Shown here: piece by piece, positions 1 to 45,100 of the stretch | Position numbering within the stretch: position 1 is the stretch's first letter | Layout: each line of letters begins with the position of its first letter | Source: Amoebophrya sp. A120 | Taxonomy: Eukaryota > Protista > Dinoflagellata | NCBI GenBank assembly: GCA_905178155.1 | Contig: CAJINV010000005.1 | Span: forward strand, 2,048,054 to 2,112,053 | DNA length: 64,000 nt | Direction of reading: 5' to 3' | Program-made: the position numbers and the translations under genes | The notes under the pieces: model-generated | Seen by the model: only the letters and a program-made list of their open reading frames with translations | The model's database searches: none | What the model was told of the DNA's origin: nothing

Positions 1-191
1 CTAGAAGAGTTTCATCCGGTGAAGATGGTACAACTAGTAGCTTCTAAAATTGTAGAACACTGTCGCTCGAAGGTGTAGCTCGAAGGTGTCGCTGGTGAGG
101 GTGGACCGCCGTCGTAGTCGTGCCGCTGGTCAGCTTAGCTTTCACGAGAGGTGGAGGACAGTGGTAGCTGCAGGTCGACGTTCCCGGGGGC

Positions 192-1220
192 GTGGTTAGC
201 TTTCAGGGGGAAGGGGAGGGGATTCTCCTGGGGGCGAAAACTCTGCAGGCGCAGGGCTTTTGAGTGCGCCGGAGCCCCCTGGAGGAAGACAAAGGCGTGA
301 CAGCGGCCCGCCCCAGGCCCCTGGAGAAGGAGAAGCACCGGGAAACCGAAAGAACACCCGGGGCGAGCCCACCCTGGGAGGGGACGAGCCCTCCAGGGTG
401 TTCCCAATTTGCGAGCACCCCCCCAAGTTGCGAGCCTTAAGGGCGGCCGCTCGTCATTCTAGCTACGCCCCACTCTATTTCTAGTTACGCCGCCAAGGCG
501 GTGGGGCTGCTTTCGACGGAGCCCACAGGGCCGCAGCTGCGGAAGCTGCGCGACAAAAAACCTGGCCAGCCAGGCAGGTGCAACCAGCCCAGGGGGACTA
601 GGCGCACTGTGTGTGATGGCCATTCCTTCGGGGCAGCGAGAAAAGGCGCCGCTTTCTTTGCGCAGGGCGGCGGGGGCATCCACACGAGGAGGGGCCTCCG
701 CCGCGAGGCAAAACGGGGTAGCCCAAACAAAGCGCAAAGCCATCCCGGGCACCGTGGCCGGGCCGGAGCTGCTAGTTCGCCTGCACCTGCGGGCGCAGCA
801 GCGCGCAGCGCGCCACCCTCAGTCAGACAAATAAGCCCTTTCCCTCCCACGGCTGCGCCCCCTTTTCCCAGGAACGAGCGCCACGTCCCGCGCTACCACA
901 CAGACACGGGTTGCTCGGCGCTAGTTTCTCCACAGGGGGCGAGGGAAGCCAGCAGCGCTGGCGAGCTCTGTGGCGCAAGCTCGGGGCGAGCCGACCCGCG
1001 CGCGGGGCAATGGGGGCGATTTTGTACTAGTAAGCTTTCTCCTAGTAAACTCTCTACTAGTACGCTTACTAGTAGTTTTTTTCCTTCCGTGTCACGTTAA
1101 ACTTACTAGTAACGTTGTTCACTAGTAAAATTCTTGGATTTTCCTTACTAGTAAGATTTTACTAGTAGAAATCGGGCCATGCGTCAATCACTTTCCTTGC
1201 CGTATAGTATATAGGGTATT
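192..1220. mobile_element. Insert I1 (ACTAGT-cluster family)
   Basis: Last ~170 bp homologous to the end of insert 2055-2717 (ACTAGT cluster, then GCCGTATAGTATATAGGG); both end at the same target base. Confidence 0.7.
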
Positions 1221-2054
1221 GTGCCGCTGGTCAGCTTAGCTTTCACGAGAGGTGGAGGACAGTGGTAGCTGTAGGTCGACGTTCCCGGGTTACTTGGGTA
1301 AGGCCCGCAGCATCTGTGAAACTTTTAATCGCGCGGCAAATTCTTTGTTTTAAGCCTTAAAGTGCCTAATCTAGGAAATCGCGTTCATAAGGTTTAAGCA
1401 TTAGAACGCCTAATCTAAGAAGTCGCAATTTAAGCACTCGAGCGCTTAAACTCACGGAAACGCAGATTGCAGCAATTTGCTCTAGCAAATTTCAAATTTG
1501 TCCACACAGCTTCAAAGATAGCCAGTCAATTAGCCATTCGAATGCTTAAAATGACTGCTTATTTTCAAGCAGTTAAGCACTCGAATGGCTAAACTGATTA
1601 TTTGTCTGTGAAGTTGCGTGAACAAATTTGAATTTGCCCAGCAGAGCAAATCTCAGACGCAGATTGCAATCTGTGTTTCCGTGAATTTAAGCACTCGAAT
1701 GCCTAAACGCTATATCTACCCCGAGCGCGAGTGCTGTTGGTGTTGCTCGAGAGACAAAGAGCTCTCGCACCATGGGAAACAAAAGCTCCGCCGGTGCAAG
1801 AGCGCAGAGCCTGCCAAAGCGTCCCGCGGCGCTTTTGTCAAGTGCCCGCCCGGCGCAAAACCGCCGTGGGCGTCGTGATCCCCCCAGATCGCGACGCCTG
1901 GGGCAATTTGCCCCATTGGGCCCCCTGCGGGCTTCGATGCACAATGCTGCAGCGCGGCGCGGGCGCCTGGCGCGCGAGGGCGAGGAGGCGAATTCAAGAG
2001 CAAGGCGCGGCGCTTAGCTTTCACGAGAGGTGGAGGACAGTGGTAGCTGTAGGT

Positions 2055-2717
2055 ACCTAGCACGGGCGGTCGTCGTGGTATCTAGCACGGGCGGTCGCTC
2101 CGCGACCGCCGGAGAGGTATGGAGTAGACAAGGATGCGATGGGCCCGATTTCCTAATAGGAAGGTTGCAGTCCTCGCGGGGAAGGGGCAGGAGGCGATAA
2201 GCGTCTAGGCGCGCTTGTCCCAGGCGCCGGCGCCCACTAGCGCCCACGCCCCAGGGTCCGCCGCGAAAGCGGGTGGGCGACGAGCCTTCTGGGGGGTTTG
2301 CAAGTTTTTGCGAGCACCCCTTAAGGTGGGTAAGCTACTATGTGCATTTTGCTGAAGCCCACGGGAAAGTGGCGCCTGCCTAAGAAGCCCTACTTACGCA
2401 AAGGGACGGGGCAACCTCCATGCGCAGCGGCCCGCCCCCCGCGACGGGAGTGGGCACGGTGCACATGAGAAGCGAGCGGGGCTGGAGGAAAGGGGCGGCC
2501 TGCCCTCCTGAAAGGCAGGAATACCCACACCACGGGGAATACCCACACCACGTCCGTGTTTTACTAGTAGATTTTTTGCTCGCCTGTCCCGTTAAACTTA
2601 CTAGTAACGTTTTTTGCTAGTAAAAATTTGCGGACTTTTGTTACTAGTAAGGTTTTTACTAGTAGGAATCGGGCTAGGCGCCAATCGCATTTCTTGCCGT
2701 ATAGTATATAGGGCATT
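2055..2717. mobile_element. Insert I3 (same family as I1)
   Basis: Shares TTGCGAGCACCCC block and the ACTAGT/TATAGTATATAGGG right end with I1. Confidence 0.7.
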
Positions 2718-2815
2718 GTGCCGCTGGTCAGCTTAGCTTTCACGAGAGGTGGAGGACAGTCGTAGCTGTAGGTGGCGGCGCGGGTGGGCAGTATTTCTGG
2801 CGCCCCGCCCTTTGA

Positions 2816-3421
2816 GCGTTTTTCCTTTCATACTGCGGTGTCCTGGCGAAACTCCAACCCCCACCAGCGGATCAGCCACAGCATATCTTCTTCCCCGAAC
2901 CAGTTCCACTTCCGCGTACCGACCAGCACCGAGACCGGTCACCACGGCGTGGACCAGCAGTAGTACAGCAAGGAGCAGGCGGTTACAACCAGGAGCCCAA
3001 GCTGATAGAGCGCCAGAAGGGAGTCGCCAGAATCCCCGAGCGAGAGCTGTGCCAGGTTTACTGCTCGCTCTGTGACGAGCTTCTCGCCCGTATCAACCTG
3101 GGAAACTGCACCAAGGCGAAGACAGGACTGCGGATGACGTTGAAGAGGGTGGCGGACAAGGAGGAAAAAGAAGACGAAAGTCAGTACCTCCCGGAGGACA
3201 TCGTGGCACCAGGGGAGCAGCAACAATTCTACACCACCACTGGCATCTTCAAGGACGACGACCAGCGAAACTGGAAGCGCATCCAGGCGTGGGTGCCAGG
3301 GCGGAAGATTCGATGTCCATGTAGGATGGACGTTGACAACGAGAGTCAAGACATCAAGAGGCTCTACACACTGAAATCAGGACAGGACTTGAACTTTGAC
3401 CCGGACCAAATCCAGTGCTGA
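2816..3421 (+). CDS. Possible cargo ORF in insert I4 (stop-free frame of ~200 codons, first ATG at 3134), Cys-rich
   Basis: Frame open from 2816 to stop at 3421; includes CQVYCSLC and RCPC; followed by an A-rich tract; no recognised family. Confidence 0.35.
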   Translation, partial: AFFLSYCGVLAKLQPPPADQPQHIFFPEPVPLPRTDQHRDRSPRRGPAVVQQGAGGYNQEPKLIERQKGVARIPERELCQVYCSLCDELLARINLGNCTKAKTGLRMTLKRVADKEEKEDESQYLPEDIVAPGEQQQFYTTTGIFKDDDQRNWKRIQAWVPGRKIRCPCRMDVDNESQDIKRLYTLKSGQDLNFDPDQIQC

Positions 3422-4035
3422 GCAGCAGTCGATAAGCACCCAAAAATAAAAAAAGTTTAAACCCCCAAAAAACAACCTTTTTTTTTTCGCGTGTTCTGGT
3501 GGTACAAAATTTTTGTAGAGATGGCAAAATTTTTCTCCCCTAATTTCACGAGAGGTGGAGGACAGTCGTAGCTGTAGGTCGACGTTCCCGGGGGCTTAAG
3601 ATCTTCCGTGGTGGAGGAGGGTCATCAAGTTCTTGAGGTGCTGCAGTACAGATTACAACCACACCGGCGTCGCGAATACAAAAAAAATCTTCTGTTCTTC
3701 TGGTTTTGACTCCACCAGCACGATTCGCGCAATCATTAAAAATCTCGTTTTGACGGCGCGATGGACCTTTTTTAAACTTGTTCGTAGTTGCGACGCTCCA
3801 CTTTCACCGCGGTTGGGTAAGTGGCAGTTGTGGTTCGTGGTTCTTGTGGATCATACATAATTCTTCCAACGGTATTGTTGTATCGTGAAGCACACCGGGC
3901 GGGTCGTCGTCGTCGTCGTGTTGTTCTTCCTTGAGCTAATGTAAAAAAAAAACTTTCTTCTCCAGCGAAAAAATTGTGGAGAACTTATTCAGATCAGACA
4001 GGGCAGCAGCAGCTTTTATCAAAAATAACAAGTAG

Positions 4036-6339
4036 TGTGTTCAGATATTGTTTCGTCACACTAAATGTTTTCGTAAATAATGGACGTCCAAGGAATCAAG
4101 TTGGTCAAATTGTTGGAATAAAGTTGGTAACTGGAATCAAGTTAAATGGAATCAAGTTGGACTCTGGAATCAAGTTGACTGGAATCAGGTTGGGTCCTGG
4201 AATCAAGTTGCGTGTCCCGTTTCCCGTTTCCGCGAGAAGCACTGCGCGGGCCCCGTTATCTCCTCCACCGCCAAACGTTATTCACCATGCACGCGCCAGC
4301 CTGTGCTTCGGCCCCCCGCCTTCCTACCTTTACCGAAGGCTGGCCTGCCTTCCGACGGGCCATGCATGTTCCGGGGCGGGGGCGTAGATGTGACGAGGCC
4401 CCGGGACACAAAAGAAAAAACCCGGGGCCCCCGGCGCAAAAGCTGTAAGCACACGCGCACAGCCCCGGACAGCCGCAAACCTGCGCGCTCCGAAGCCGAA
4501 TCCAAAACGCCTCGGCGAGCCCGGGCACAGAAAAACCCCGAACCACCCACGTCGCGCAGGAGGTGTCAATGAGCTCGGGCCATTCATCAATCTGGAGTCG
4601 ATGGCGAAAGCTTCGCGCCAGCCAGGAAATAAACAACTCACACTCCCCAGAGAGGCAATCAAGCAGCGGTCCTTCCGCCAGGGAGAGACCTACCAGAGGG
4701 CAAGGAAGGCGAAATGGCGGCCCCCGAGACACCTTCCGCAGGAAGGCAAAACGGAATCCCCCGAGACTGACACCATCCCCAGGAAGGCACTGTGGCAACA
4801 AAACCTGCCGACTTGTAACATTTCTCGCCACGTCTCTATCGACCAGAGGAAGAAAAGCCAGACGCCTTTGATGAACGTGGCCGCCTTTCAAAAAAAATAG
4901 CGGAGAACTTTAGGCACGAGGGTGTGGCAGCCACAAAACACAAAAAGCGCAGCAGCTAGATTCTTCCAAGGAGAGGCATTGCGAGGCGAAGGACTGATGG
5001 GGATGAAGTTGTGGTGGTTTACTTGATTTCATTCCACCACTTGATTCCAGGTAGTAACTTGTGTTCAGATATTGTTTCGTCACGCTAAATGTGTTCGTAA
5101 ATAAGAACCACTCCCCACGACTGCGTCGTGGGGCAAGGCTGATTTGAATTGCTGCTGGGCCAAGTTTGGAGTTATTGCGTGTATTGCAAGCGCTTTCTGC
5201 TTGGTTAGTGAAAACAGGCGACAGGTAGTCAGAGGCGACGCCGTCCGCGGCCGGGCTCACTGACCAAGCTCCAGGTAGTACTCAACTGCCAAGAAGAACC
5301 AAAAAAGAGAAAAAAAGCCGACGTCTCCAGGGCAGGGCATTCACCGCGGCCGAAGAAACTGCTTTTCAGAGGCAAAAAGCAGCACAGGCCTCGACACAGA
5401 ATGGAACCGCAGGCGCCACCGGCTTTTTTTTGATGCAAAAGTGAAATCCCAAAGGGGAGTTCGAGAAAAAGCACAATAGCAGAGCAAGCAGCTGAACAAT
5501 AACTCCCCAGCGCGTCCTGTGAAAATATGTTCTAGCACAAGCAGCGCTCTTTCATCGCACAAGAAAGCAAGGCGCGCACTAAGTCGTGCCTGTGGGCACT
5601 TTCGAAATGCGCGCGCGCGCCGGTGGCACTTTCGAAATAGGCGGCGCGAGCAATGCTTTTAAAACGCCCAACAAAGCAATGCGCATCAGAAAAGCTTTTG
5701 AGCACTTTCGTGCGTCTTGCGTATTTTCTGAAGAGTCTTCAGAAGCTTTTCAGTCTTCAGAAGATTCTACAGAAGAGGGTCTTCAGAAGGTCAAAGCTTC
5801 TGAAGAATGCGGAAAAAAGGACGCAAAAAGTTGTCGCTTTGGAGACACAATTGAAAAACCTTCTGAAGGTTTTCAACCTTCAGAAGGTTGGCCAAAATTG
5901 CGACACTTCACTGCCTTTTTTTGTCTAAAAAGTCGGAAAGTCTTCTGAAGGTCAAAAAAGTGCCACCTTCTGAAGGTTTTCAACCTTCAGAAGATTTCAA
6001 AACGGTCATTTTTCACCTTCTGAAGGTTTTTTTGCTCATTTTCCATCTTTTTCTTCTGAAGGTCAAAAAAAACCTTCTGAAGGCGTGACCTTCAGAAGAA
6101 AAAAATGCTCACGGTTAAACCGATGGTATGCTCGCTCAAAAAAAAGAGGCTTTTTTCCATTTCTTCTGAAGGTTCCAGTGATGATTTTGGACCTTCATAA
6201 GACCTTCAGAAGAAAAAGCTTCTGAAGGTTCAGCAGCAATTTTGCCAAGCCTGCCCCTTATAGTTATTAGCTTATGATGAGGGAGATGTTGTTGTGTTCA
6301 GATATTGTTTCGTCACACTAAATGTTTTCGTAAATAATG
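4036..6339. repeat. Array 2: three copies of a 45-47 bp direct repeat separated by inserts of ~0.98 and ~1.19 kb
   Basis: TGTGTTCAGATATTGTTTCGTCAC(A/G)CTAAATGT(T/G)TTCGTAAATAA at 4036-4082, 5060-5104, 6293-6339. Confidence 0.92.
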
Positions 6340-6821
6340 ATGAGGGAGATGATTTGATGGCTCTTCATCCCGGTTCTATTCTTTTCGAGTAGACATCAGC
6401 GAAATGTACTTATCAACCGTGAACTACCAGAAGATCATATTCTTATTCGTCCTGCAAGGAAATGACGATTGTTCAGCCCAAGAGTAGCTCGTACAACTTA
6501 CTGCTGCGGTCATGTGCTGTGGATCCTGACAGCTACCGAAGAGTGTTCACTAGGCCGCGACTAAAGAAATCTCTACAATGACTAGCGAAAGGTAAGAAAA
6601 CCCATTATTTAATAGTATTCCGCAATAGAAACAAAGAATAGAAACGAAAAACAAAAACAAAGAATGGAAACGAAAAACGACAACAAACAATGGAAACGAA
6701 AAACGAAAACAAAGAATAGAAACGAAAAATGAAAACAAAGAATAGAAACGAAAAACGAAAACAAAGAATAGAAACGAAAAACAACAACAACGAAATGCAG
6801 ACAAAGCGCCCAAGCTTCTAA

Positions 6822-7455
6822 GCGGCGAAGCCTTGAAACGAAGAGGCCGCGAAACGCCTAAGCAGCGAAGCCTCGGAGCAGCGAAGCCTCGAAGCTGCGA
6901 AGCCTCGAAGCAGCGAAGCCTCGAAGCGGCGAAGCCTCGAAGCGGCGAAGCCTCGAAGAAGCAGCGAAGCCTCGAAGAAGCAGCGAAGCCTCGAAGAAGC
7001 AGCGAAGCCTCGAAGCGGCAGCGAGGCCTCGAAGCAGCAGCGAAGCCTCGAGGCAGCAGCGAAGCCTCGAGGCAGCAGCGAAGCCCCGAGGCAGCAGCGA
7101 AGCCCCGAGGCAGCAGCGAAGCCTCGAGGCAGCAGCGAACCCTCGAGGCAGCAGCGAACCCTCGAGGCAGCAGCGAAGCCTCGAAGCAGCAGCGAAGCCT
7201 CGAAGCAGCAGCGAAGCCTCGAAGCAGCAGCGAAGCCGCGAAGCCTCGAAGTGGCGAAGCCTCGAAGCAGCGAAGCCTTGAAGCAGCGAAGCCTCGAAGC
7301 AGCAAGCCTCGAAGCAGCAAAGCCTTGAAGCAGCGAAGCCTCGAACCAGCGAAGCCTCGAACCAGCGAAGCCTCGAACCAGCGAAGCCTCGAACCAGCGA
7401 AGCCCCGAACCAGCCAAGCCTCGAAGCGGCGAAGCCTCGAAGCGGCGAAGCCTCG
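6822..7455. repeat. Minisatellite, 16-19 bp unit GCAGC(AGC)GAAGCCTCGAA
   Basis: Directly visible tandem array. Confidence 0.95.
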
Positions 7456-9030
7456 AATTTGTCGTTGCGCCGGACCGGAGCGACAAATCCAGGGGTCCCC
7501 GGACCCGCGAATTTGTCGTTGCGCCGGACCGGAGCGACAAATCCAGGGGTCCCCGGACCCGCGAATTTGTCGTTGCGCCGGACCGGAGCGACAAATTCAG
7601 GGGTCCGCGGACCCGCGAGTTTGTCGTTGCGCCGGACCGGAGCGACAAATTCAGGGATCCCCGGACCCGCGAGTTTGTCGTTGCGCCGGACCGGAGCGAC
7701 AAACTCACGGGTCCCCGGACCCGCCAATTTGTCGCTGCGCGGGACCGGAGCGACAAACTCAGGGGTCCCCGGACCCGCCAATTTGTCGTTGCGACGGGCC
7801 GGAGCGACAAACTCAGGGATCCCCGGACCCGCCAATTTGTCGCTGCGCGGGACCGGAGCGACACATTCAAAGGTCCCCGGATCCGCGAGTTTGTCGTTGC
7901 GCCGGACCGGAGCGACAAATTCAGGGATCCCCGGACCCGCGAGTTTGTCGCTGCGCCGGACCGGAGCGACAAATTCAGGAATCCCCGGACCCGTCATTTT
8001 GTCGTTGCGCCGGACCGGAGCGGCAAATCCAGGGGTCCCCGGACCCGTCATTTTGTCGTTGCGCCGGACCGGAGTGACAAAATCAAGGGTCCCCGGACCC
8101 GCCATTTTGTCGTTGCGCCGGACCGGAGCGACAAAATCAGGGGTCCCCGGACCCGCCATTTTGTCGTTGCGCCGGACTGGAGCGACAAAACCAGGAGTCC
8201 CCGGACCCGCCATTTTGTCGCTGCGCCGGACCGGAGCGACAAAATCAGGGGTCCCCGGACCCGCCATTTTGTCGTTGCGCCGGACCGGAGCGACAAAATC
8301 AGGGGTCCCCGGACCCGCCATTTGCATTTTGTCGGTCGTTGCGCCGGACCGGAGCGACAAAATCAAGCGTCGTCGGACCCGCCAATTTGTCGTTGCGCCG
8401 GACCGGAGCGACAAAAGCGGGGTCCGTCGGACCCGCCAATTTGTCGTTGCGCCGGACCGGAGCGACAAAAGCGGGGTCCCCCGGACCCGCCAATTTGTCG
8501 TTGCGTCGGACCGGAGCGACAAAAGCGGGGGTCCACGGACCCGCCACTTTGTCGTTACGCCGGACCGGAGCGACAAATTCATGGGTCCCCGGACCCGCGA
8601 ATTTGTCGCTGCGCCGGACCGGAGCGACAAACTCAGGGGTCCCCGGACCCGCCAATTTGTCGTTGCGCCGGACCGGAGCGACAAATTCAGGGGTCCCCTG
8701 ACCCGCCAATTTGTCGTTGCGCCGGACCGGAGCGACAAATCCAGGGGTCCCCGGACCCGCGAATTTGTCGTTGCGCCGGACCGGAGCGACAAATCCAGGG
8801 GTCCCCAGACCCGCCAATTTGTCGCTGCGCCGGACCGGAGCGACAAATCCAGGGGTCCCCGGACCCGCCAATTTGTCGTTGCGCCGGACCGGAGCGACAA
8901 ATTCAGGGGTCCCCGGGCCCGCGAGTTTGCCGTTGCGCCGGACCGGAGCGACAAATTCCGGGGTCCCCGGACCCGCGTATTTGTCGCTGCGCCGGACCGG
9001 AGCGGCAAATTCAGGGGTCACCGGACCCGC
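7456..9030. repeat. 54-bp tandem repeat, ~29 copies, with internal inverted repeats
   Basis: Unit AATTTGTCGTTGCGCCGGACCGGAGCGACAAATTCAGGGGTCCCCGGACCCGC(G/C); 18-aa periodicity in the ORF track. Confidence 0.95.
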
Positions 9031-10883
9031 GAAGCCCGGTGCCGGACCATGGCCGCCGAGCCGGTGCCGGACCATGGCCGGGCCCGCCGCCCGGCGCCAG
9101 ATCGCGGCTACGCCGGTGCCAGCATGCAAGATGGCGGCAAAGGCCAACCTGCCAGCCGCGCCGGTGCCGGATCGTGGCCAAGCCAGTCTGGCGCTTTCAA
9201 AATCGCAGGCGGGTGGGCCTGCCTGTGCTGAAGCGCCGGAACCGATTTTCCACAGATAGACGCTGAGTTTGTGCTACTATTCATCATCATCTAGCGGAAT
9301 ACTATTAAGTCTGCAGGTTACTGGACACGGGAAGCGGGATAAGGCTAGTAAAGGAAGACCATCCAAATCATCTCAAACTTGTACAGTGCCTAATGAATAG
9401 AGCAGCCGTGGTCGTGACGTGCCATTGACGTTCACTCAATACGTGTATTGATGATCTTGCACGTTGTTCAGAACGACCTGCGTGTCGTGAATAACTAGAA
9501 CCAAAATCGACCTCGATTCGCAACGCATCGCACTATATCAAGATCTTTTCCATGCCGCTGGCTCATGCAAATTTGGTAACGCTAACGATCTCTTTCACGC
9601 ATGATAATGTGAAGATCAAGATCTCCGCCTGTCCAGGCTTGATACATCTAGAGTGTGCGGCTGTGGTAGTGGTCGTCCTTGCGTCTATTAAAGAAGTTAC
9701 GCTAAGCAAGCACACGCATCTTTTTTCGGGGAGCGATCGCGCGAACAACGCAATTCCAGTACGAGAACGTTGACTCATCTTGGCTGGGGCGGTATGCCCT
9801 CGGCACGACAAGTTTAAACGAATAAGTAATTATTTTCCGACTGTACATGTTATCATTCTGTTCGATCATCAGCTTTCGTTCTGTTTGATCAAAAACGAAA
9901 AAACAGTTCGCAAGTTCAAGAAAATTGTCGACCTCCCGGGTCACAAACCCAATCTTTTTGTACCTCGGGTAATTTTTTCGAGGAGCCTCATACCTCTCCC
10001 CTTCTTTAGTGGAACGTAAATACCTTTCAAGAAAAAGCACCTCCTACTCATACATAAAACTTCGTAGAAACGTGATGTGGTTGTCCGTCTGTGCAGCGTT
10101 TCTAAAGGACCACCTAGGACAAAGTTATCAATATCAACTCAAATCTTATTTGCGTGTAATAATAATCACGAGTCCCTACTTTTTTTAAAATCAAGCTCTG
10201 CAAATTCAAATCAATGTGTGTGTCCTGTATTGCGCGAATAAAGCGTTCCACTGTGACTGATGCGTTTGGAGGACTCACATGACAAAGACAAATTTGAATC
10301 TCATATAACAGATTACGCATGCCAATGAAGTTTGTTTCGCATGTACAGGAGAATTTTCCATGCGTGCCCCCCAAACGAAACAAACTATGCACCGCTGAGA
10401 ACCCCCAACCAAGCGAAAGAAAAACTGCGCTGTTCCATGCTCTGCATCACAAATTCACAGTAGAACAGTTTTTTCTTGCGATATCCCGCACACAAGGTCA
10501 ATCAAGCTCAAATTAATCATGAATTTTGGGTACGAAAATTAAAGTTCAGCATCATCTTCTTGTCAAAAAAAGCTCTAACTCATCCATTGCGGTTAACAAC
10601 ACTATAGTGCTTTTCGCCACTTCTCAATAGCAACATCTGGGAAAAACTATACGACCACTAGGCTTCGTGTATCCATTTTATTTTCAAGTACTAGTATTGT
10701 AACTTGATGAATGAACTTTTTGCATAGTATTTGCAGGTTCAGCACGGAATTACCACGTCGAGACTTGTCCAACAGAGCGCCACGACACAAAAGTCAATTT
10801 CTTCTCAACTGCAATCAAAGAAAATCCAAATCGCGAGTGCTGATTCAAATCTGGTAAAGAACCCAACTGCAGAAGCCCCGCGC

Positions 10884-26900: not shown

Positions 26901-29900
26901 GTCCACCCCTGCCGGTATTTCTAATGTAGAAGTCGTTCCCCCAGCAAGAGGTGGAACAGGACGGCCGCCGGTCACGGCCGCGTGTTGAGACACGCCGTCT
27001 TGTGTGCTTTTGTTCGAACTGGTGGCCGTGCCGCTGTTCTGATCAATCACCGACTGCTGTTGCCCTTTACCTCGACCCTCGGTGGATTCCTTACTCCCCT
27101 TGTCCGAGGAGGCCTTCTGGGCTCCTTCCGGAAAAGCACTTCCTTCGGAGGAGAACATCTGCCCGATCTGGCCCGCCGCCGCCGGCGCCAAGGAACCACG
27201 ACCGGCGAAAGACCCGGCGGCGGCGCTTGCGGCGTGCAAATTCGGCGGCACCAGCACCGACTGGTGCTGTCGGAGAAACAGCCCGAGTAAGGGACAGTAC
27301 ACCGGCAGCGTGCTCTATCGCAAGAAAACACGACTGTTGTAAACTTGTCGTCGTGGGGTCCAGAGAATGCAACACAGAAGTCTGTTTGTCTTGCTAAACA
27401 TAACATGGTGCATCCCATTTTTGGATTTTTCAGTGTGCAGTTTTAGGAAGCACGCAATGCAACTTTTTCTTGTCAGGTCCCGCCTTAGGGATGTGATGCA
27501 AAATGATCTTGCCAAGACGAAGAACTCGTATATTCCATGAAACAGTTCAATATGTTCCGTGCGATATGCTCGGAAAGTAGTCGATATCCAGCAGAAAATT
27601 CACGTCCGTGATCGCCCCCTCCCCGAACTGAAACACCGTCGGGCCCTTCCGAAACCGGCGGCGCAGGTCCGTGACCACGTCCTTGCTGTCGACTTGCTGC
27701 ATCACCAATCTCGCGGAATCGTCCAAGAGCAGCGACGATGGGTTGGGCACGGATTGCATGAGCATCCAGAGCAGGTACGCAGTGACCAACTCGTCCTCGG
27801 AGCTCCGATTTTGGCCCCGGTTGTAGCCACAGCACACGAAAATGATGGGCGGCGGAGTGGTTTGCTCGCCCGCATCCTGCCGGTCCTCGACGCGCTGCAG
27901 CGCGGACTGCGCGCCGGTGTTGGCCGCGGCGCCGGAGGTGGTGGCGCCGGAGGTGGTGTAATCTTGCACCAAGGCTGAAATCACCGCGGACGCGTTCAGC
28001 AGGGAACCCAGCAACAGCCTCTTCGCGTCGCGGACCCAGGGAATCGCACGGGTTCCGTTCGTCGTGTAGAGCAGTTATTCCAATGAAAATAACCGCCCCA
28101 CGACCCCCGAAAGTAGATACTAATTGTTCTGATGCAAAGTTTCCACAGTACATGGACACAGACACCGTTTGTCTTGCATGAAAGGTGGACTTTGGGTCTT
28201 CCTGAAGATGTAGAGGCATCTTCCAAGAAGTCACAGGCCAGGCTGTTGCTGGGGGCCCTTTTTGCAGTGCAGATTTTTGTTGCTATTCACCACTGGAAAT
28301 TTGTGATCTTGAGGCATGCAAGATGACGACTGTTTCCGTTGGGACGAACAAGCTTTGAAGATGCCATACAAATGCTTCCACGTTCTGAGAAAGATCATAG
28401 GGGCACAACTGTTCAATAGGATAACAACACCGTTTTGTTCTCTACTTTAGGATCCAAAAACGACTTCGCGTCCACGCCCTTGTCAAACCGCTTAATGCGA
28501 TCGCCCTCGGCTGTGACGCCGCAACGAAGCGTTCTGTCCGGGTCCAGCCCGTCCGCGACCTTGTTCAGAGCGTACACCGACCCGCACAGCTGCACGGCGT
28601 TCGCGCCCGAGCCCAACGCCGTCACGGCCGCCGACAACACAATGTGCTGCACCAGCACCACGACGCTGTTCTGCACCTCGTGCCGGGGCGCGACCTGCCC
28701 CGGGAGCAAGACCACGGACACCTTGCGTTGTGTCAGCGGCACCACCGCACCGGGATCCGCCGCCCCGAACCGCGCCATCGAAGTACTAGTATACGGCGAC
28801 GGCAGCCAGGGTGTCGTGCGCGCAGTGAAAGTGCTGGAATGTTGGGGTAGTAATTGGTGGCGGAGTCCGTACGCACTTGCACTTGAAGATGTCAAGGCCG
28901 TCAACGTCGCCGGGTTACTCGTTACAACCGGGGTTGGTTGTTGTTGTTGACCCCCGGTGGTGGAGGTCCCGAAAACGACCTTGCTGCCGCTGTTGCTTTT
29001 GGCGGGGAGAACTACACCTTTTATTCTATTAGAGCATCTAGATCTAGAAGCTATTGTATTTGCGAAGTAGTGGACAAGAAGGCCCCCGTCGTCGAGGACT
29101 TCTCCTTGTCCCCCAGCAGCATATATGCTTGCTGAGCCAGCATAAAAATTACGATTGGTATACTAGAGACCACAAGTTGCGAACACCTGCGCACACACCA
29201 CAAGTTGCGAACACCTGTTAAAAACCGGAAACGCACACAAGCACTGGAGGAGATGGCGGAGGACCTCAAGGAGAGGCTTGGCAAAGTCGAAGACCGGCAG
29301 GACCTGCAGCAGAGGGCACACGAGGAGCTGACGGAACGCATTGGAAATGTCGAGGAGGAAATTATGCTCGCGCTAGAAGACCAAAATAAGGAAACAAAGG
29401 AGGTCAAGAAGGCGGTCAACGAGCGCACCGGCGGCATCCACCAGGCTATTCAAAATATCGAGATTCTCATCCGCAACTGGCAGATCAGCACGCAGCAAGG
29501 AGAAATCATCAGTGACATCCCCACCGAAGAGAAAAACGTCTCCGCTGATAAAGTCGCTGCGTCGCAGCTGCAGGCTCTAGTGCAAGAGCAACAGCAGCAA
29601 TCGTCGCAGCAGCAGGCGGGAAGCGGAGCCAGCAGTAAGAACAAATCCAACACGGCGAAGCGCTCCAGCACGACCGGCGTTTCCTCTTCAGCGGCAAGCA
29701 CACTCTCTTCGAAGAAAAGTAATCAGGTCTGGGTGACCAAGGACAAAAACGCAGAAAATTATACTCAACATATATCCCTATAATCTGCATTATACTCAAC
29801 ATTTCAGAATCTGCATCGGGTCCTCTAGAAGATGCAGCTCCATTGTATCCCTAGGGTCATCTAGAAGCTATACTCAATCGCTCTTCATCATTCTATTCTA

Positions 29901-32900
29901 GAAGCTGCCGCTGTTGCTCTTGGCGGGGAGAACAGCACCACTAAGAGCCTGTACGATTAATCGACCCCCTTCTCGATACCGAGAAGCCCCCCCAAATCCG
30001 GATCCTGACCGACCTTACCCCCCTACGCCCCCCTTCTCGAAATCGAGGGGCTTTTTATCGCGAATCCTGTTTCCGAAATTGAACGCCGGTGCTACGGCGC
30101 ATTTTGCGCCATTATTTTCTTTTTGTGAGATTACAGCGCCAGGCGCGGTTTCGCTTCGAGTAGATGCTATTTAATACCAAGCGAAACACATATCGCCCGC
30201 GCTGTGGCGCTTTTTCTACTTCGTGCAGTTTTTCCCAAAAGAGCGCAGTCAGGTGGTCTCTGGCTCGTTTTGCAGTGCTTGCCACAAAGCAAAATAGCCC
30301 TCTGCTTCTGCTGATGTCTGCCACTATTCTCGCTAAAACGACCAGAAAGTCTCTTTTCGGAGAGCAGTCGTAGCGCAACTATTTCGCAACAGAAACACGC
30401 TGCGCGCACGCAGTAAAACAACAGATCCGCTCCCAAGTAGATCCCGGACACCCTTACTCTTTCGCAGCCCGCGGCCCCTTTTTCAATCGGGCCGCTTTTT
30501 GTAAGCTTCTCTAGAAACTTGTCCTCTCTATGGAGGTGGTGCTTGATGTATTTCCTCCTGATGTGGCTTCTAAAAAGTCATCTTGGTGCTAACCACACCA
30601 AGAAAAGCTTCTGCTCCACTAAGAAGAGAAAAAAGCACAACCGCACTACCACCCCGCACCCATATTTTCTGGATTTGCCATCTTTGGTGCGGTGGACGGG
30701 GGAGCTCCGATTTTGCGCGCGGCCTCATAGTTGTGCTTTTTGGACACGACTTTTGTAGCAAAGCAAGAGGAGCAACGCCGAGAAACTGGAGCTAGGTTTC
30801 TTGCGTGCCCTGCCTGGCAGTTATCATCTGAGTACTGAATCACTACTGCGTTGCCTTTGTCCTAAGCTGTTGCTTTTGGCGGGGAGAACTACACCACTAA
30901 GAGATGATGAACTTTGCGTACTATTTGCCATTTGCGTCGGCGACGTGGCAGACGGATCGGGAAAACTCTGGTTCACCGGGGTAGCAGACCCAGCCCCCGC
31001 GGCGCGAGGGGGAAATAAATGAACATCCCGGTCCTTCGGCGCGGTGGCGGTGGCGGGGTCGTCCGGTACTAGTGCCGGTTGAAGATGCAGGGGAATCAAG
31101 GGCTTCAGCTCCGGTAGTTCCCGCTGCTTCTCCAACTCGGCCATCCACTCCTCTAGGTCGGCGTCCGTATTGTGAGGAAAGATCCCTCACTCCCATATCA
31201 AAACAAAGTTTGGATTTCTAATGCTGGACCTCCGTACACAGGTCAGACTTGTCTTGCGGTAGAGGACTGCAGGCATATGCCAAGCCTGAGCAGAGAGGTC
31301 TTGATGTAGGCCCCTAGCATGACAACAGTCGACACTGTAAGCCCAAAAGCATCACAAACCGCCCGCATAATTCGGCGGACGCTCTGGATTTGCATTCTTG
31401 CAAGACAGCCAGGATTTCATTTGTGGTCACAAATCTGCATCACAAATGCGCTTTCAATACGGGGAGGGGGGATTTTTCCTTTTGATAGTCCGTGACCACT
31501 CCCTTGGTCAAAACCTCCTCCTGACACAGGGTCTGCGCCACGTCGAGCCGCGTCTCCGGAATCTTGTGCAGCGACACGATCACGTAGCGGCACCCCCCCA
31601 TCCAGACCGACCGCGCGCGGACGATGCACCACGACTGGTTGGCCTTCGCGATCCGCATGGTGGACACCCATTTCATGCAGCCCCGATTGTCGTTCATCGT
31701 CTGCTGCAGCCGAGACTTGGCCTCCCGAGGGTTCTGCACCCACGGCGCAAACTATGACAGTGCACAACTCCCCCTCCCCCTCATTTGTCATGCAAAATAC
31801 CCAATCCACCCTTTGCCTCTTGGCACTGTTGGCATGACAAATTCTGGCACTAGCCCAAATAGCACTACAATCCAGTGCAAATTTGTCATGCATACCCGAC
31901 TGCACCACATCAAAAACCTTTGCACCGTCGCCGCAAGCAGCTACGGACGCAGGAGATCTAGGGTCAGAACCTTTGTCATGCAAGACCGGCAATCTTGCTG
32001 ATGCTTGTATTGCCGAGAATGCTATACAAATGAGAGGGGGAGTTGTGCACTGTCATACAAACTCCACCGGTTCGAACACCGTCCAGAAGGATTGGTCAAC
32101 GACCGATATTATGCACATTGCATACATATCTAGGTCTGGAAAAGGATGCAAACTTGCCTCTGATGGTACTACGCAGTCGGGTACGCACAAAGTAGACAAA
32201 AGTCTGTGTTTGCAAGAACAACGATCTTCTTCGCCGCCCACTTATTTTTACCAAGAAGTAGAAGTAAAGGGGCGATTTATAGTCGGATAAAGGGGTTGTA
32301 CTTATTAGGCATCGAGAGGCCTCCTTCTGCCCAGTTCGTGTAGAACTACAAGAAGTGCTTGTACCATGTGCATTCCAGGTCTCCCACCTGCGAGGACCCA
32401 GATATTCTATAATCTTTGCATTTCCTACAGGTCAAGATCGTCGCCGGAGAGACGGCGGCAACATAATCTTCACTAGTGCAGCCAGTACTAGCCGCGTCCA
32501 CAACCTGCCGCGGTCCTCCAGCTGTTAAACTGCTCCCGTTGCCCGGCCCCGCAGCTCCGGTACTCGTCGCGGCAAGCAGCGCTCTCAACCCCTGGGAAAT
32601 CCCACACACCACGCCGTCTCCGACGAGAAACTGCGCTTCCTGCTGTGGCGTGATGAAGGAAAGTGCCAAGGTATCGCCTGGAAGCAAAACGCAGCACCCA
32701 CGACCCCCGAGTGCTTCTCATGCAGATTTGCATTTGAAGGAACATGTGTCCTTACCGTCATGCGCCCCCTTGAGAAAAACCAGACGGGAAGCGTTTTCGC
32801 TCGATAATAATTCGAAAAAATGTAGTTGTAGTTATCATGCTCTAATCGCGCTAAAAAGCACCAGATGGCTTTCTCGTCGTGCGAGTGTGGTGCACGCTGG

Positions 32901-42100: not shown

Positions 42101-45100
42101 CTTCAAGTGGCGCCCCGCGGATGCGGTCGGCGTTGTGGCCGTGCCGCGCCGATGGGCCCCGGGCAACTAAAAGCGCCACAGGCTGCTAGATCAAAGACCG
42201 CCCTTTACGGGCGGGGCGCTTTTCATCAGGATGGGCATCATTTCACCCATTTCGGTGCCCGCGATAGCAAACCGTTTACGCGGGAGCCTTTGCGGGCCAC
42301 CACACACGGGCCAGGCGTCGCCGGCCTGCAGCCAAGACTGTCTCTGAGCAGTTGTAGTTCTTCATCACTTCACTCTAACTGGGCGCTGCCCCAGCTCCCG
42401 CATTTTCGTTGTCACACGCATCAAGAAGTAGGTGGGTGGGAAGGTAGGTGTAGACGCGCCTCCGTTGCGCCCCGCAAGTGAAAATCGCCCACACCTGGAG
42501 GACACGCGGACGCATCATTGTCCAATGACGACCAACCAACCCACCTACCCACTGCTCAGCCACGAAGGAGGGCGTGATCTTTTTTGTTTCGGTTGATTAT
42601 GAATGGACGAGAGGAGCGTCAGTATCACGAGGTAGGTAGGTAGGGAGGTAGGTGGGTAGCGTGCATCTCATTCCCGATATCAAAGCACAACTTTCTCCAG
42701 CTTCGATTGTGGGAAGCAGAACGTCGCCGACAGACTCACGTACATCAGGATAAGCGAAATAGCGACACCGCGACGCCGAATATGTCTCCGCCACAATACG
42801 TCCACCACCAAACGCAAACCAGACGCACGTCGACCTCACCACGCACTGCGACTCCGGAAGAATGTTTTTCTATAACCCGCGACGGCCCGCCGTCTTCAGC
42901 ATTTGCATAACCAACCAACCGACCAACCAACCCACCCCGAATTAACGCCTACAGGCACACGCCTACTCTATTTTTGATACAAACTGTAACTGGTGCTTTC
43001 TGTTTCTATCTACATTTATTGCCTTCCACGAGTACACAGCACGCGCGCTACACAATCAGTCGTGCCGTATCTGTAGATAAAAAACGAGTACCTCTCTCCG
43101 CACCACCCGCCACTCTTCTTGCAACGGCTCCAGTGGAGCTGGTGTCGACGGGGACCAAGCAGCACGCTTCGCCTGAAGCGTGCCATGGTGGGGACCTACG
43201 AGGCAGCACGAAGCGCCTCTGCAGGTGGTGCCGGAGGGCCACGCAGCATGCTTCGAAGAAGCGCGCCGCCATGTAGACCTGCGGAGCCGACACCAAGCCC
43301 CTGTGGAGTTGGTGGCAACGGGGACCACGCCGCACGCTTCATTCGAAGCGTGTCGGGCGAGGGACCTGCGGAGACGACGCCAGGGAGTTCCTAATGCGGA
43401 GCTGGTGCCGGCGGGGACCACGCAGCGCATCTAGCCCGATGCATGCCGTAATAGGGGCCGGCGCAGCGCGCTTCTTTCGAAGCGTGCCGTCACGGAGACG
43501 CGAGCACACTATGCCAGGCCTCTGTCCGAAGCACTGCCATGTCGTGCAGATCTGCGCACAGCAGCAGCACTACCTTGGCGTGCGTGTCGCGCGTCCACAC
43601 TTGCTGCTCGCGCAGGTGGGACTCATTGATTTGTTGCGCGCGGCTTGCGGTCCCACCCCAATTGGGCGCGGGTCGTGTGGCGGAGTGCGGTAACGCGCGT
43701 CATCATTGGAGTGCACCTGCTTGCCAGCACATCCAACAAAGACCTCCCGGGCGTGCAGCTCGGCTTCCGCCGCAGCACAGCCCGGGAAAGCGTTTCCGAA
43801 ACTCTCTCGCGCGCCTTCACTGGAGTGCACCTGCGTGCCAGCACCTCCAGATCCAACCCCCCGGGCGTGAACCTCGGCTTTCGCCGCAGCACCACCCGGG
43901 AGTGCATGGCAGAGCATGGCCGGCGCGTCTTCACTGGAGTGCACCTGCGTGCCAGCACCTCCAGCTTAGACCTCCGGAGCGTGCACCTCAGCTCTCGCTG
44001 CAGCACCACCCCGGAGTGCGTCGCATACATCTGCCGCCTCGCGCGCCTTCACTGGAGTGCACCTGCTTGCCAGCACCTCCAGATCCGACCTCCCGGGCGT
44101 GCACCTCGGCTTTCGCCGCAGCACCGCCCGGGAGTGCGTGGCAGAGTGCGATCTGCGCGTCTTCGCTGGAGTGCACCTGCGTGCCAGCACCTCCAACTTA
44201 GACCTCTAGGGCGTGCACCTCAGCTTTCGCTGCAGCACCACCCCGGAGTGCGTCCCGCACATCTGCCATGGCTACTCTCCTTTTTCTTTTTTTTTTGGTG
44301 ATAAACGGCGCAGGGCCGCCGCGGGTGTGTACTTAATATTCCAAAGCCAGACCGTGCAACACCACACGCAGAGGGGAAACGACAACACGCGCCCGGCGCG
44401 CGCCGTTGCCCCTACAGCGGTGTCGCTCCCGTTAGCTGGCAGCGCTTAACCTCATTTCGCTATTGATAGATATGTTGGACGCGAAATACCAAATAAAAAA
44501 CGAGTACCTCTCTCCGCACCACCCGCCACTCTTCTTGCAACGGCTCCAGCTCGCTCCACTTTGGCGAGAATAAATGGTAGAGTTCCCCAACCTTGTCTGA
44601 CAGCATGCACTTCAACGCCAGCAAGCAGTGCCCGTATCAAATACAAACATCCCTGGACGACTGGAAGATTGCGAGACTTGTCACGACGCAGTGCTTTTTT
44701 CCATGACCCATGGGGTCAGGCATGGAGGACCTAGCATGACAGATTCTGCTGTGAGAGTGAGACCTCTATCACACAACTTCTGCATGAGACGCTGGCTGCT
44801 CTCAACTTGGTCAAAAGTGCGCGACTTTATATATTTGGCAATCATGCAATAGAAATGCTTGTACGATCCAGACTTCGCATGACAGGTTGCAGTGTTCCAG
44901 ACAACATCCAGGGATATTTACAATGCATAGTTCGTGTGCCTGCACTACGTACTCCTCGAACATGTCCCAGACGATCCCGGTCCGCATATGCGTTGCAAAA
45001 GTAAAAGTATCGTTGTCGAGATTGCATTACAAATTTCTGCAGATGAAGCAAGGAAAAGTAGAACTAATTTTTTCTGATGGTGAATTATAGAATTTTTAAT

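Follow-up and report, generated by a model that had tools for sequence, protein, structure and literature searches.

What history leaves one short stretch of DNA in five partial copies, wrapped around four inserts? The locus that raises this question, referred to below as the main array, lies at positions 120-3595 of the window, by which we mean the whole stretch of 64,000 nucleotides of Amoebophrya sp. A120 DNA that was analysed. Its repeated segment is 72 bp long and is called T here. The parts of the array are as follows.

120-191, no strand: T copy 1 (T1-72), which runs on into the native left flank
192-1220, minus strand (putatively the RNA sense, which is uncertain): insert I1, of the dispersed I1/I3 family
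1221-1289, no strand: T copy 2 (T1-69)
1290-2011, minus strand: insert I2, of a second family, with a constant left end and a truncated right end
2012-2054, no strand: T copy 3 (T14-56)
2055-2717, minus strand: insert I3, an I3-type member of the I1/I3 family
2718-2773, no strand: T copy 4 (T1-56)
2774-3543, plus strand: insert I4, a left-truncated, ORF-bearing relative of TIR transposon family X
3544-3595, no strand: T copy 5 (T21-72), which runs on into the native right flank

Results

Structure and integrity of the main array

The recomputed coordinates exactly reproduce the five partial T copies and the four insert sizes (1029, 722, 663 and 770 bp for I1 to I4) that an earlier note on this DNA had reported. 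The T copies extend over 72, 69, 43, 56 and 52 nt, with 0-2 mismatches each, and junctions are re-used as that note had described, with T1 following directly after both I1 and I3, and with I3 and I4 both starting after T56. In the 115.5-Mb genome of Amoebophrya sp. A120, T is found in five places, all of them at the main array and nowhere else, so chance is excluded as the origin of the array.

A more trivial origin would be an error of assembly, or the plain segmental tandem duplication of a single unit. The assembly is repeat-rich and based on long reads, and the share of main array junctions found in independent short-read contigs (public runs, same organism) is three out of eight, namely T/I1, T/I4 and I4/T/flank. 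However, these junction-spanning contigs show no differences from the assembly, and RNA/DNA contigs covering 3303-3600 and 3550-4082 span the right side of the array. The adjoining inserts between T copies have no relation to one another, the T copies vary in single bases as well as in extent, and the same architecture is seen at 13 sites with a unique target each time. We consider an artefact or a plain tandem duplication very improbable.

Long duplications and re-used sites across the genome

The earlier note had pointed to similar architecture at three other loci in the window. All three exist, two as arrays (4036-6351 and 28983-30903) and one as a single insert (43077-44549). Their targets are called T' and T'' in the second and third arrays.

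4036-6351, no strand: second array, with three long T' copies and a 15-bp T' fragment
4036-4082: T'(..47)
4083-5059: insert J1
5060-5104: T'(1-45)
5105-6273: insert J2
6274-6288: T'(45-59)
6289-6292: 4-nt filler
6293-6351: T'(1..)
28983-30903, no strand: third array, with three T'' copies, within a minus-strand coding exon; in order, T''(..36), insert K1 (29019-29903), T''(1-44), insert K2 (29948-30865) and T''(7..)
43134-44492, no strand: single insert M1, with a perfect 57-bp duplication at 43077-43133 and 44493-44549

J1 and J2 belong to dispersed families and share up to 98% identity with other copies, while in K2 a TIR element of ~1.67 kb is present as a truncated copy and K1 is mostly unique. 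M1, truncated on the left, belongs to a family for which we see at least 10 right-end-anchored fragments.

Measured over 42 junction pairs, the target duplications are 15-83 bp long with a median of 52 bp, and the median insert is 1032 bp (interquartile range 832-1116 bp). The long duplications around inserts are real and are also present elsewhere: looking up other copies of I1/I3 and I2 with their flanks, a check that the earlier note had proposed for each insert, we see that 17 of the 21 copies examined lie between long duplications of a target that is unique and unrelated to T. Three or more target copies are present at 13 of the 26 sites examined, compared to less than 2.4% expected from random placement, and so the suggestion that used sites are preferentially re-targeted is borne out far above random expectation genome-wide. 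The 13 arrays each have a different unique target, they are up to four inserts deep, and left or right break positions recur within them. A simple history of nested insertion fits 11 of the 13; it fails for the main array (I2 against I3) and for the array at L015. Such an array is a pile-up of transposon copies.

The earlier note had compared the long duplications with CRISPR spacer acquisition, and one could think of a dedicated CRISPR- or integron-like machinery for archiving foreign DNA between repeats. The likeness ends with the repeat-insert-repeat appearance. Each repeat is a unique local sequence, different from locus to locus and variable in extent, the inserts come from dispersed repeats of this very genome, and the window holds no leader, fixed repeat or associated genes. 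Because the length that is duplicated varies and the inserts are endogenous mobile elements, we abandon the acquisition reading, which is the least probable of all the origins weighed in this study.

The inserts are copies of mobile-element families

The inserts are copies of mobile-element families, not anonymous cassettes. I1/I3, I2, J1, J2, M1, K2 and the partner insert at L013 each belong to a dispersed repeat family, and copy numbers of these families in the genome range from 8 to more than 35. The inserts are heterogeneous and free of reverse transcriptase (RT) or integrase coding, as previously noted, but they are not arbitrary captured DNA. I1 has 31 matches in the genome at 76-93% identity and lacks ~110 bp of the left end of its family. 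The right-end ~160-200 bp are common to I1 and I3, and the left-end ~110 bp of I3 are common to other I1-family copies; the earlier statement that the inserts lack shared termini was therefore wrong. The inserts have neither poly(A) nor a clear simple-repeat tail. The I1/I3 terminal hairpin module is present in 42 genomic copies and the I2 left terminus in 8.

Truncation is frequent, and one element end is constant where the other is often truncated (I2, the I1 family and the M1 fragments). The I1 family includes 7 right-truncated and 2 left-truncated copies. The right end of I2 is cut at family position 722, with full copies being ~1.05 kb or longer, and truncation points in this family fall at positions 722, 671, 624 and 203. 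I3 carries an internal deletion of ~430-530 bp, with a 15-nt duplication at the deletion junction (about 2519-2556), and 17 nt of its left end are self-duplicated (2055-2077). There are no terminal inverted repeats at the extreme ends of I1/I3 and I2, and those of I1-I3 are subterminal only; subterminal inverted repeats and iterated palindromic motifs, typical of DNA transposons, occur in many of the families.

Judged by its sequence, I4 is a truncated transposon relative. Its open frame stops at 3418-3420, and an X-type right terminus (3439-3543) directly abuts T21. Canonical copies of family X have TIRs and 4-5-bp duplications, whereas the inserts of the array have duplications of 36-72 bp. 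We also considered that I4 might be a host-gene retrocopy fused to a MITE fragment, but rejected this, as the same layout of ORF plus terminus is found in the L072, L074 and L075 copies. Pfam searches with the I4 ORF, its paralogues, the K1/M1 ORFs and the window ORFs returned a ComB-type phosphatase gene only, and an ESM Atlas search with the I4 ORF family gave no match above chance.

In RNA contigs, J1 and J2 are spliced out at non-canonical sites that adjoin inverted repeats. An excised intron RNA as the template for J1 is unsupported, since other J1 copies begin at position 1 and the spliced-out part begins at 31 or 82.

Junctions bear the marks of target-primed synthesis

The junctions bear the marks of polymerase-driven, target-primed insertion, among them the pairing of a constant with a truncated element end described above. 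Microhomologies of 2-9 nt are found, and of 5-9 nt at the constant end of I1/I3. At the left junction of I1/I3, 8 of 12 copies have a target that finishes in GTA or TAT, and in 8 of 10 the right end is followed by GT. Marks of template switching are seen in the I1 filler, where the first 15 nt of the insert (192-206) repeat a 10-nt stretch of T (about T16-25), as well as in the I3 end duplication and the I3 deletion junction; a T5-18 fragment inside L074 is taken as a further case. Some duplications are 'empty', having no insert: L007 (64/-21), L031 (63/1) and, in the window, 6288/TTGT/6293. In another group, comprising I4, L072, L074, X in L049 and K2, an intact TIR-element terminus lies exactly at the target junction and the other junction is messy. 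We infer which end of an element is the 3' end, and the structure of L007 would fit the opposite polarity.

Search for an enzyme

As the inserts carry no coding for RT or integrase, the enzyme must act in trans, in agreement with the earlier note. The genome has 106 RVT_1 matches, among them an APE+RT LINE with a 5'-truncated copy that has a 15-bp duplication. APE LINEs lie at C1:9930715 and C1:11117227, and roughly 12 weak RVT_1 matches fall in frames of 700-900 aa. In a search limited in the amount of genome DNA read, the 42 copies of the I1/I3 terminal hairpin module and the 8 I2 termini all lacked an RT match in their vicinity, and LINE 3' ends do not resemble the ends of the insert families. 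GIY-YIG matches occur in three places (C2:452428, C25:26428 and C5:2277347), in open frames of 1259-1535 aa, with no RVT_1 match beside them. We see no transposase gene linked to the insert families and no spliced-leader relic at the inserts. With Rfam, no hammerhead was found in 1-6500 at E up to 1, nor at gathering score in the whole window; across the whole window (gathering) and 1-6500 (E up to 1) the matches were chance microRNA-like ones on palindromes, with no ribozyme.

Discussion

How the arrays may have formed

The reading that we favour, and to which we give about an even chance, is that an array consists of independent non-autonomous insertions piled up at a hot spot by a trans-acting, polymerase-driven, target-primed pathway, most likely using an RT encoded elsewhere (LINE-type or other). 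One target strand would be nicked beside a short motif, the I1/I3 target reading ..GT(T/A)GTA at the break, and the nicked 3' end would anneal to the constant template end and be extended. Synthesis would often end early or switch template. The new strand would then be joined by microhomology to the opposite strand, broken 15-83 nt away, and fill-in after joining would duplicate the interval between the breaks. If the preferred, sequence-determined break sites are kept in the duplicated target and several families share the machinery, then the site would be hit again and arrays would grow. For the main array, where I2 and I3 mutually block one another in the order of events, a single step of unequal exchange or homology-guided resolution among the T copies would have to be added.

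Several observations count against an RT. The intact TIR-transposon termini at junctions (I4, L049, K2) are explained at least as easily by a transposase-initiated DNA route, insert size is narrow (interquartile range 832-1116 bp), the subterminal inverted repeats and iterated palindromes are DNA-transposon-like, there is no poly(A), and no partner LINE was found. A rival reading is DNA-level 'one-ended' or replicative transposition, initiated by a transposase and completed by a polymerase. The transposase would join one precise terminus of a DNA element to the target, and the free 3' end of the target would be extended by copying the element, with abortion or switching after ~1 kb. Repair to a distant nick would then leave a long duplication of variable length. 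Such a route would account for the truncated TIR elements that keep an intact terminus right at the T junction (I4, L072, L074, X in L049, K2), family X otherwise making 4-5-bp duplications, and for the subterminal inverted repeats and clustered, iterated palindromic motifs in several families; the 'empty' duplications could also be excision footprints. However, microhomology of 5-9 nt where I1/I3 have their constant end speaks for annealing-primed synthesis rather than transposase strand transfer, I1/I3 and I2 are without terminal inverted repeats at their extreme ends, the end-anchored M1 fragments resemble 5'-truncated retroposons, and no transposase gene is tied to these families. We know of no documented case of this mode among eukaryotic transposons, and regard it as rather unlikely.

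A further reading is generic capture during break repair. Recurrent staggered double-strand breaks, as paired nicks, at fragile motifs would be filled in and sealed by microhomology-mediated end joining, either empty, as a tandem duplication, or with whatever cDNA or extrachromosomal transposon DNA was available. In its favour are the 'empty' duplications, the 4-nt fillers and templated ones of the kind that polymerase-theta-type joining typically leaves, the re-use of break positions and the presence of several insert classes, the mostly unique K1 included. Yet whole families (13-15 copies examined for I1/I3) have spread with precise, family-specific ends, which indicates transposition, the target microhomology is family-specific, and insert sizes are narrow rather than random. 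Break-repair capture is improbable.

A broader reading, possible but doubtful as a whole, is an undescribed pathway of low specificity in which nearly any mobile template would be copied for roughly 1 kb from a single precise end. Its templates would be retroposon-like 1-kb families, TIR transposons or introners, and ORF-bearing relatives. Microhomology would resolve it across breaks 15-83 nt apart, and sites would be re-used, giving arrays in about half of cases. Its enzyme would not be of the classical LINE or transposase kind, and candidates would include a transposase-initiated, polymerase-completed reaction or the reverse transcription of excised introner RNA.

Significance

The second-strand step of target-primed insertion is poorly understood even for R2 and L1, and the long, variable duplications and re-used sites seen here offer a natural setting in which to follow second-strand breakage and joining. 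The 40-80-bp direct repeats that bracket kilobase-size inserts are also substrates for unequal exchange and precise loss, and gene structure could therefore be unusually fluid. The non-canonical splicing of at least two elements, together with an array in a coding exon, bears on fast intron gain in this lineage. Were the low-specificity pathway to exist, its products would be removed by non-canonical splicing and insertions into exons thereby tolerated, giving a second engine of intron gain. Most repeats in this type of genome are unclassified (Farhat et al., PMC7789003), and the insert families define a large share of the repeats that had gone unclassified so far.

Comparison with known systems

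Amoebophrya introners, which average ~240 nt in A120, lie between short direct repeats (Farhat et al. 2021, PMC7789003; Gozashti et al. 2025, PMC12130899); those of A120 include some of non-LTR origin and some whose mechanism is not known (Gozashti et al. 2025, PMC12130899). J1 and J2 are like them in being removed from RNA at non-canonical sites beside inverted repeats. Introners differ in being shorter and in their short direct repeats, and the MITE copies here have 4-5 bp. The main texts of both papers (PMC7789003, PMC12130899) make no mention of long duplications or stacking. Unlike TIR transposons and MITE introners, I1-I3 have no fixed short duplication and no TIRs at both ends. One end of I1/I3 is Helitron-like, in that a hairpin with a stem of 9 bp sits 10 nt from a ..CTAG terminus, but the copies lie between long duplications and have no TC at the start of the other end. 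CRISPR and casposon (Cas1) integration is unlike what we see, in that repeat extents differ here (72, 69, 43, 56 and 52 nt) and the inserts are endogenous.

Penelope-like elements make variable and long duplications. They are also frequently truncated, form complex multi-copy insertions and have 30-40-bp 'tails' at insertion ends (PMC8557442). All of these are points of likeness to the families studied here, in which there are, however, no pseudo-LTRs, no head-to-tail copies of one and the same element and, in the Rfam searches, no hammerhead ribozymes.

Among non-LTR systems, R9 of bdelloid rotifers reportedly makes an exceptionally long duplication, as the title of the report quoted in citing papers has it. 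The target duplication measures 126 bp in R9 and 49 bp in SLACS of trypanosomatids, and these elements and the CRE group show that target-primed insertion with nicks tens of bases apart is possible. CRE/SLACS, R9 and R1 are autonomous, strictly site-specific in multicopy genes (rDNA, spliced-leader) and fixed in duplication length, whereas here the targets are unique and the length varies. Two non-LTR features are present in our data: target duplications that vary in length (15-83 bp, with a median of 52 over n=42), and a constant, putatively 3' end with truncation at the other in I2, the I1 family (7 versus 2) and the M1 fragments. LINE-mediated retroposition in trans, as in the L1-type mobilisation by target-primed reverse transcription of SINEs, processed pseudogenes and chimeric retrocopies, shares with our families non-coding passengers, constant and truncated ends, variable duplications, far-junction microhomology and template-switch chimeras. 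It differs in that there is no poly(A) here, the median duplication is 52 bp versus 7-20 bp, no partner LINE whose 3' end matches was found, and TIR DNA transposons are among the passengers.

The closest likeness in overall architecture is to double-insertion tandems, described for R1 with 33-nt rDNA target copies and as P-element and jockey dimers (McGurk & Barbash, bioRxiv 10.1101/158386). All 13 arrays share with them the order element, target copy, element, as well as re-use of a preferred site, and later unequal exchange between target copies is possible in both. The earlier note knew of no description of the pattern; element-target copy-element structures were in fact already known (bioRxiv 10.1101/158386), but the arrays reported here differ in that up to four inserts from different families are stacked, between target copies of 15-83 bp and varied extent, at half of the sites examined.

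Stacked inserts between long target duplications

The array at 120-3595 was found to be exactly as an earlier note on this DNA had described it, with five partial copies of a 72-bp target segment, T (T1-72, 1-69, 14-56, 1-56 and 21-72), separated by inserts of 1029, 722, 663 and 770 bp (I1 to I4). The copies show 0-2 base differences between them, and T has zero occurrences beyond these five in the whole genome (115,520,608 bp, 401 contigs). Independent short-read contigs from the same organism span the T/I1 junction (141-405 and 1-244), the T/I4 junction (2744-3495) and the passage from I4 through T into the right flank (3303-3600), all with zero differences. The three further loci to which the note had extended this architecture are also real:

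4036-6351: array on a second target, T', with inserts J1 and J2
28983-30903: array on a third target, T'', with inserts K1 and K2
43077-44549: single insert M1 (body 43134-44492), with a perfect 57-bp duplication

Just 3' of the second array lies a block of nested tandem repeats (6600-9270; periods of 13, 8/16, 19 and 54 bp), in which the 54-bp unit is present as ~29 units in two runs.

Long duplications are characteristic of the insert families: 17 of 21 I1/I3- and I2-type copies at other loci have direct repeats of 15-72 bp on both sides, of unrelated, locus-specific sequence. Duplications compiled from 42 junction pairs range from 15 to 83 bp (median 52). Long-duplication inserts in the window and the other loci have a median length of 1032 bp (interquartile range 832-1116 bp), and this narrow size of ~1 kb is also seen in unrelated, unique or truncated inserts. 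The preferential re-use of a site that the note had proposed is borne out in the window and ~215 kb of other loci, where 13 of 26 sites carry at least three target copies; even with 20,000 inserts, random placement would give fewer than 2.4% a neighbour within 70 bp. Array partners are mutually unrelated, and one of the partner families numbers at least 35 genome copies.

Identity of the inserts

I1 has 31 genome matches at 76-93% identity. I3 matches I1-type copies over ~110 bp on the left and ~160 bp on the right, and differs in the middle; a 15-nt duplication marks the junction of its internal deletion, and its left end carries a self-duplication of 17 nt. A third family has only the ~35-bp terminal hairpin module, found in 42 genome copies, in common with I1/I3. 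I2 corresponds to the leftmost 722 bp of a ~1.05-kb or longer element; eight copies of its family have a constant left terminus, and right ends in the family are cut off at varied points. J1 and J2 belong to young families, with identities to other copies of up to 98%. K1 is mostly unique sequence, K2 is a truncated copy of a ~1.67-kb TIR element, and M1 is a left-truncated member of a family with many right-end-anchored fragments elsewhere in the genome. MITEs with TAT...ATA inverted repeats (ends TATCAAATGCAAAAATGTCTGGGTCTGGAAG...), which are the introner type commonly found in this genome, have at least 13-16 copies in the window, between 11782 and 54534.

The DNA of I4 is unique apart from its last 105 bp, which correspond to the right terminus of TIR transposon family X (856 bp, ends TTAGGGGAG..., duplications of 4-5 bp). 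Two 100% identical X copies on different contigs (L043:1501-2356 and L044:749-1604) point to very recent activity. Relatives of the I4 open frame were found at four other loci, and three of these (L072, L074 and L075) end in the same X-type terminus; this makes I4 a left-truncated copy of an ORF-bearing X relative and not the retrocopy of a host gene. Four copies of this lineage-specific ORF family lie directly upstream of an X-type terminus:

window 2972-3543
L072:1364-2619
L074:818-1962
L075:1334-3303

The family has a conserved C-terminal block (TTTVGI...NWERI...CxCRMD...GQDL) and gave no match in Pfam and Atlas searches. It is probably the protein of an autonomous relative of the X MITEs.

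Junctions and order of insertion

In the I2 family, the I1-type copies and M1, one end is constant and the other often truncated; seven I1-type copies are right-truncated versus two left-truncated. In 8 of 12 copies of I1/I3, the target bases that directly precede the constant end are ..GT(T/A)GTA or similar, and where the target is without this motif the element supplies it. Past the opposite end, the next bases are 'GT' in 8 of 10 copies. The junctions also carry templated fillers: part of T is repeated in the 15 nt at 192-206, T5-18 in the filler at L074, and at L007 21 nt of native upstream flank sit between a T copy and the element. Three arrays contain insert-free or 4-nt-only duplications (64 joined to -21 at L007, 63 to 1 at L031, and 6288 to 6293 through TTGT in the window), and J2, inside a T' copy, lacks its own duplication but has end homology of 6-8 nt. 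Taken together, these features are marks of target-primed synthesis that ends early, switches template and is joined by microhomology. T copies at L031 also contain MITE insertions of the ordinary kind, with duplications of 5 bp. At the left junction of M1 (43126-43142), the target end GCTCCA is followed by one base and then its reverse complement TGGAGC, a pattern that chance or a snap-back templated start could account for.

Insertion into an existing target copy must leave fragment boundaries nested. We see this in 11 of 13 arrays; nesting fails at L015 and in the T array, where no order of removal undoes the series T1-69, I2, T14-56, I3, T1-56. One unequal exchange between an I1+I2 haplotype and an I3+I4 haplotype would resolve the order, and such an origin fits position T44, where copies 1-3 have G and copies 4-5 have C. 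Alternatively, the order may reflect homology-guided resolution via the right ends of I1 and I3, which are almost identical. Identical break positions are often used again, both in the T array (T1 and T56, each twice) and at T', L017, L031 and L049, and this is best explained by sequence-determined nicking together with identical element ends picking the same microhomology.

Proposed mechanism

Our best reading is that the inserts were made by target-primed copying of templates in trans, in which the polymerase is most likely a reverse transcriptase (RT). Matches to the RT domain RVT_1 number 106 in the genome and include an APE+RT LINE whose protein is 63% identical to that of a second copy (L060). 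The LINE copy and, separately, matches to the GIY-YIG nuclease domain lie at:

L059:298-2997: RTE-like APE+RT LINE, 5'-truncated copy, 15-bp duplication, 3' UTR of only ~30 nt
C2:452428, C25:26428 and C5:2277347: GIY-YIG matches in open frames of 1259-1535 codons, no detectable RVT_1 alongside

A genome-wide search for RVT_1 next to the GIY-YIG frames found none; these frames could be Penelope-like or other nuclease-bearing elements. The search for a partner enzyme found no RT match in the genome near the termini of the I1/I3 hairpin module or of I2, and an Rfam search of the window gave no hammerhead ribozyme. A serious rival is a DNA route, wherein insertion is initiated by a transposase and completed by a polymerase; truncated TIR transposons with one exact terminus at the junction occur among the inserts, and several families have subterminal inverted repeats and iterated palindromic motifs. 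That the underlying pathway is of a so far undescribed kind we regard as possible but rather unlikely.

RNA and coding context

In RNA-type contigs (runs X3 and X4, presumed RNA), J1 is skipped from 4113 or 4164 to 5057, with ends TT..AA or CT..AA, and J2 from 5106 to 6275, with ends AA..AT, so that neither removal uses GT-AG. These joints were not seen in the DNA run, and the contigs showed no splicing of the T array itself. J1 and J2 resemble Amoebophrya non-canonical introns in having inverted repeats near their ends.

The K array interrupts a minus-strand frame (28416-31187), leaving two broken frames of 249 and 120 codons. In silico removal of the array and one target copy gives, by translation, a continuous minus-strand ORF of 298 codons; the array therefore lies inside a coding exon and must leave the RNA, as otherwise the gene is disrupted.

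Comparison with known systems

Amoebophrya sp. A120 has abundant TAT...ATA inverted-repeat introners with 5-bp duplications and non-canonical splicing (PMC7789003), all of which this genome shares. Its repeats amount to 23.8% and are mostly unclassified (Farhat et al. 2021, PMC7789003), and its introners are of non-LTR, LTR, TIR and unknown origin (Gozashti et al. 2025, PMC12130899). The searchable main texts of these papers make no mention of long duplications or stacking. Repeated insertion at one site is described for R1 tandems with 33-nt target copies and for P-element and jockey dimers (bioRxiv 10.1101/158386). Our arrays have this same architecture, and repeated insertion at one site and long duplications are per se already known. 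R9 and SLACS/CRE make long duplications as strictly site-specific elements. What is new here is the variable duplication of 15-83 bp at unique targets, a signature common to several unrelated families, truncated DNA transposons among them, and stacking at about half of the sites.
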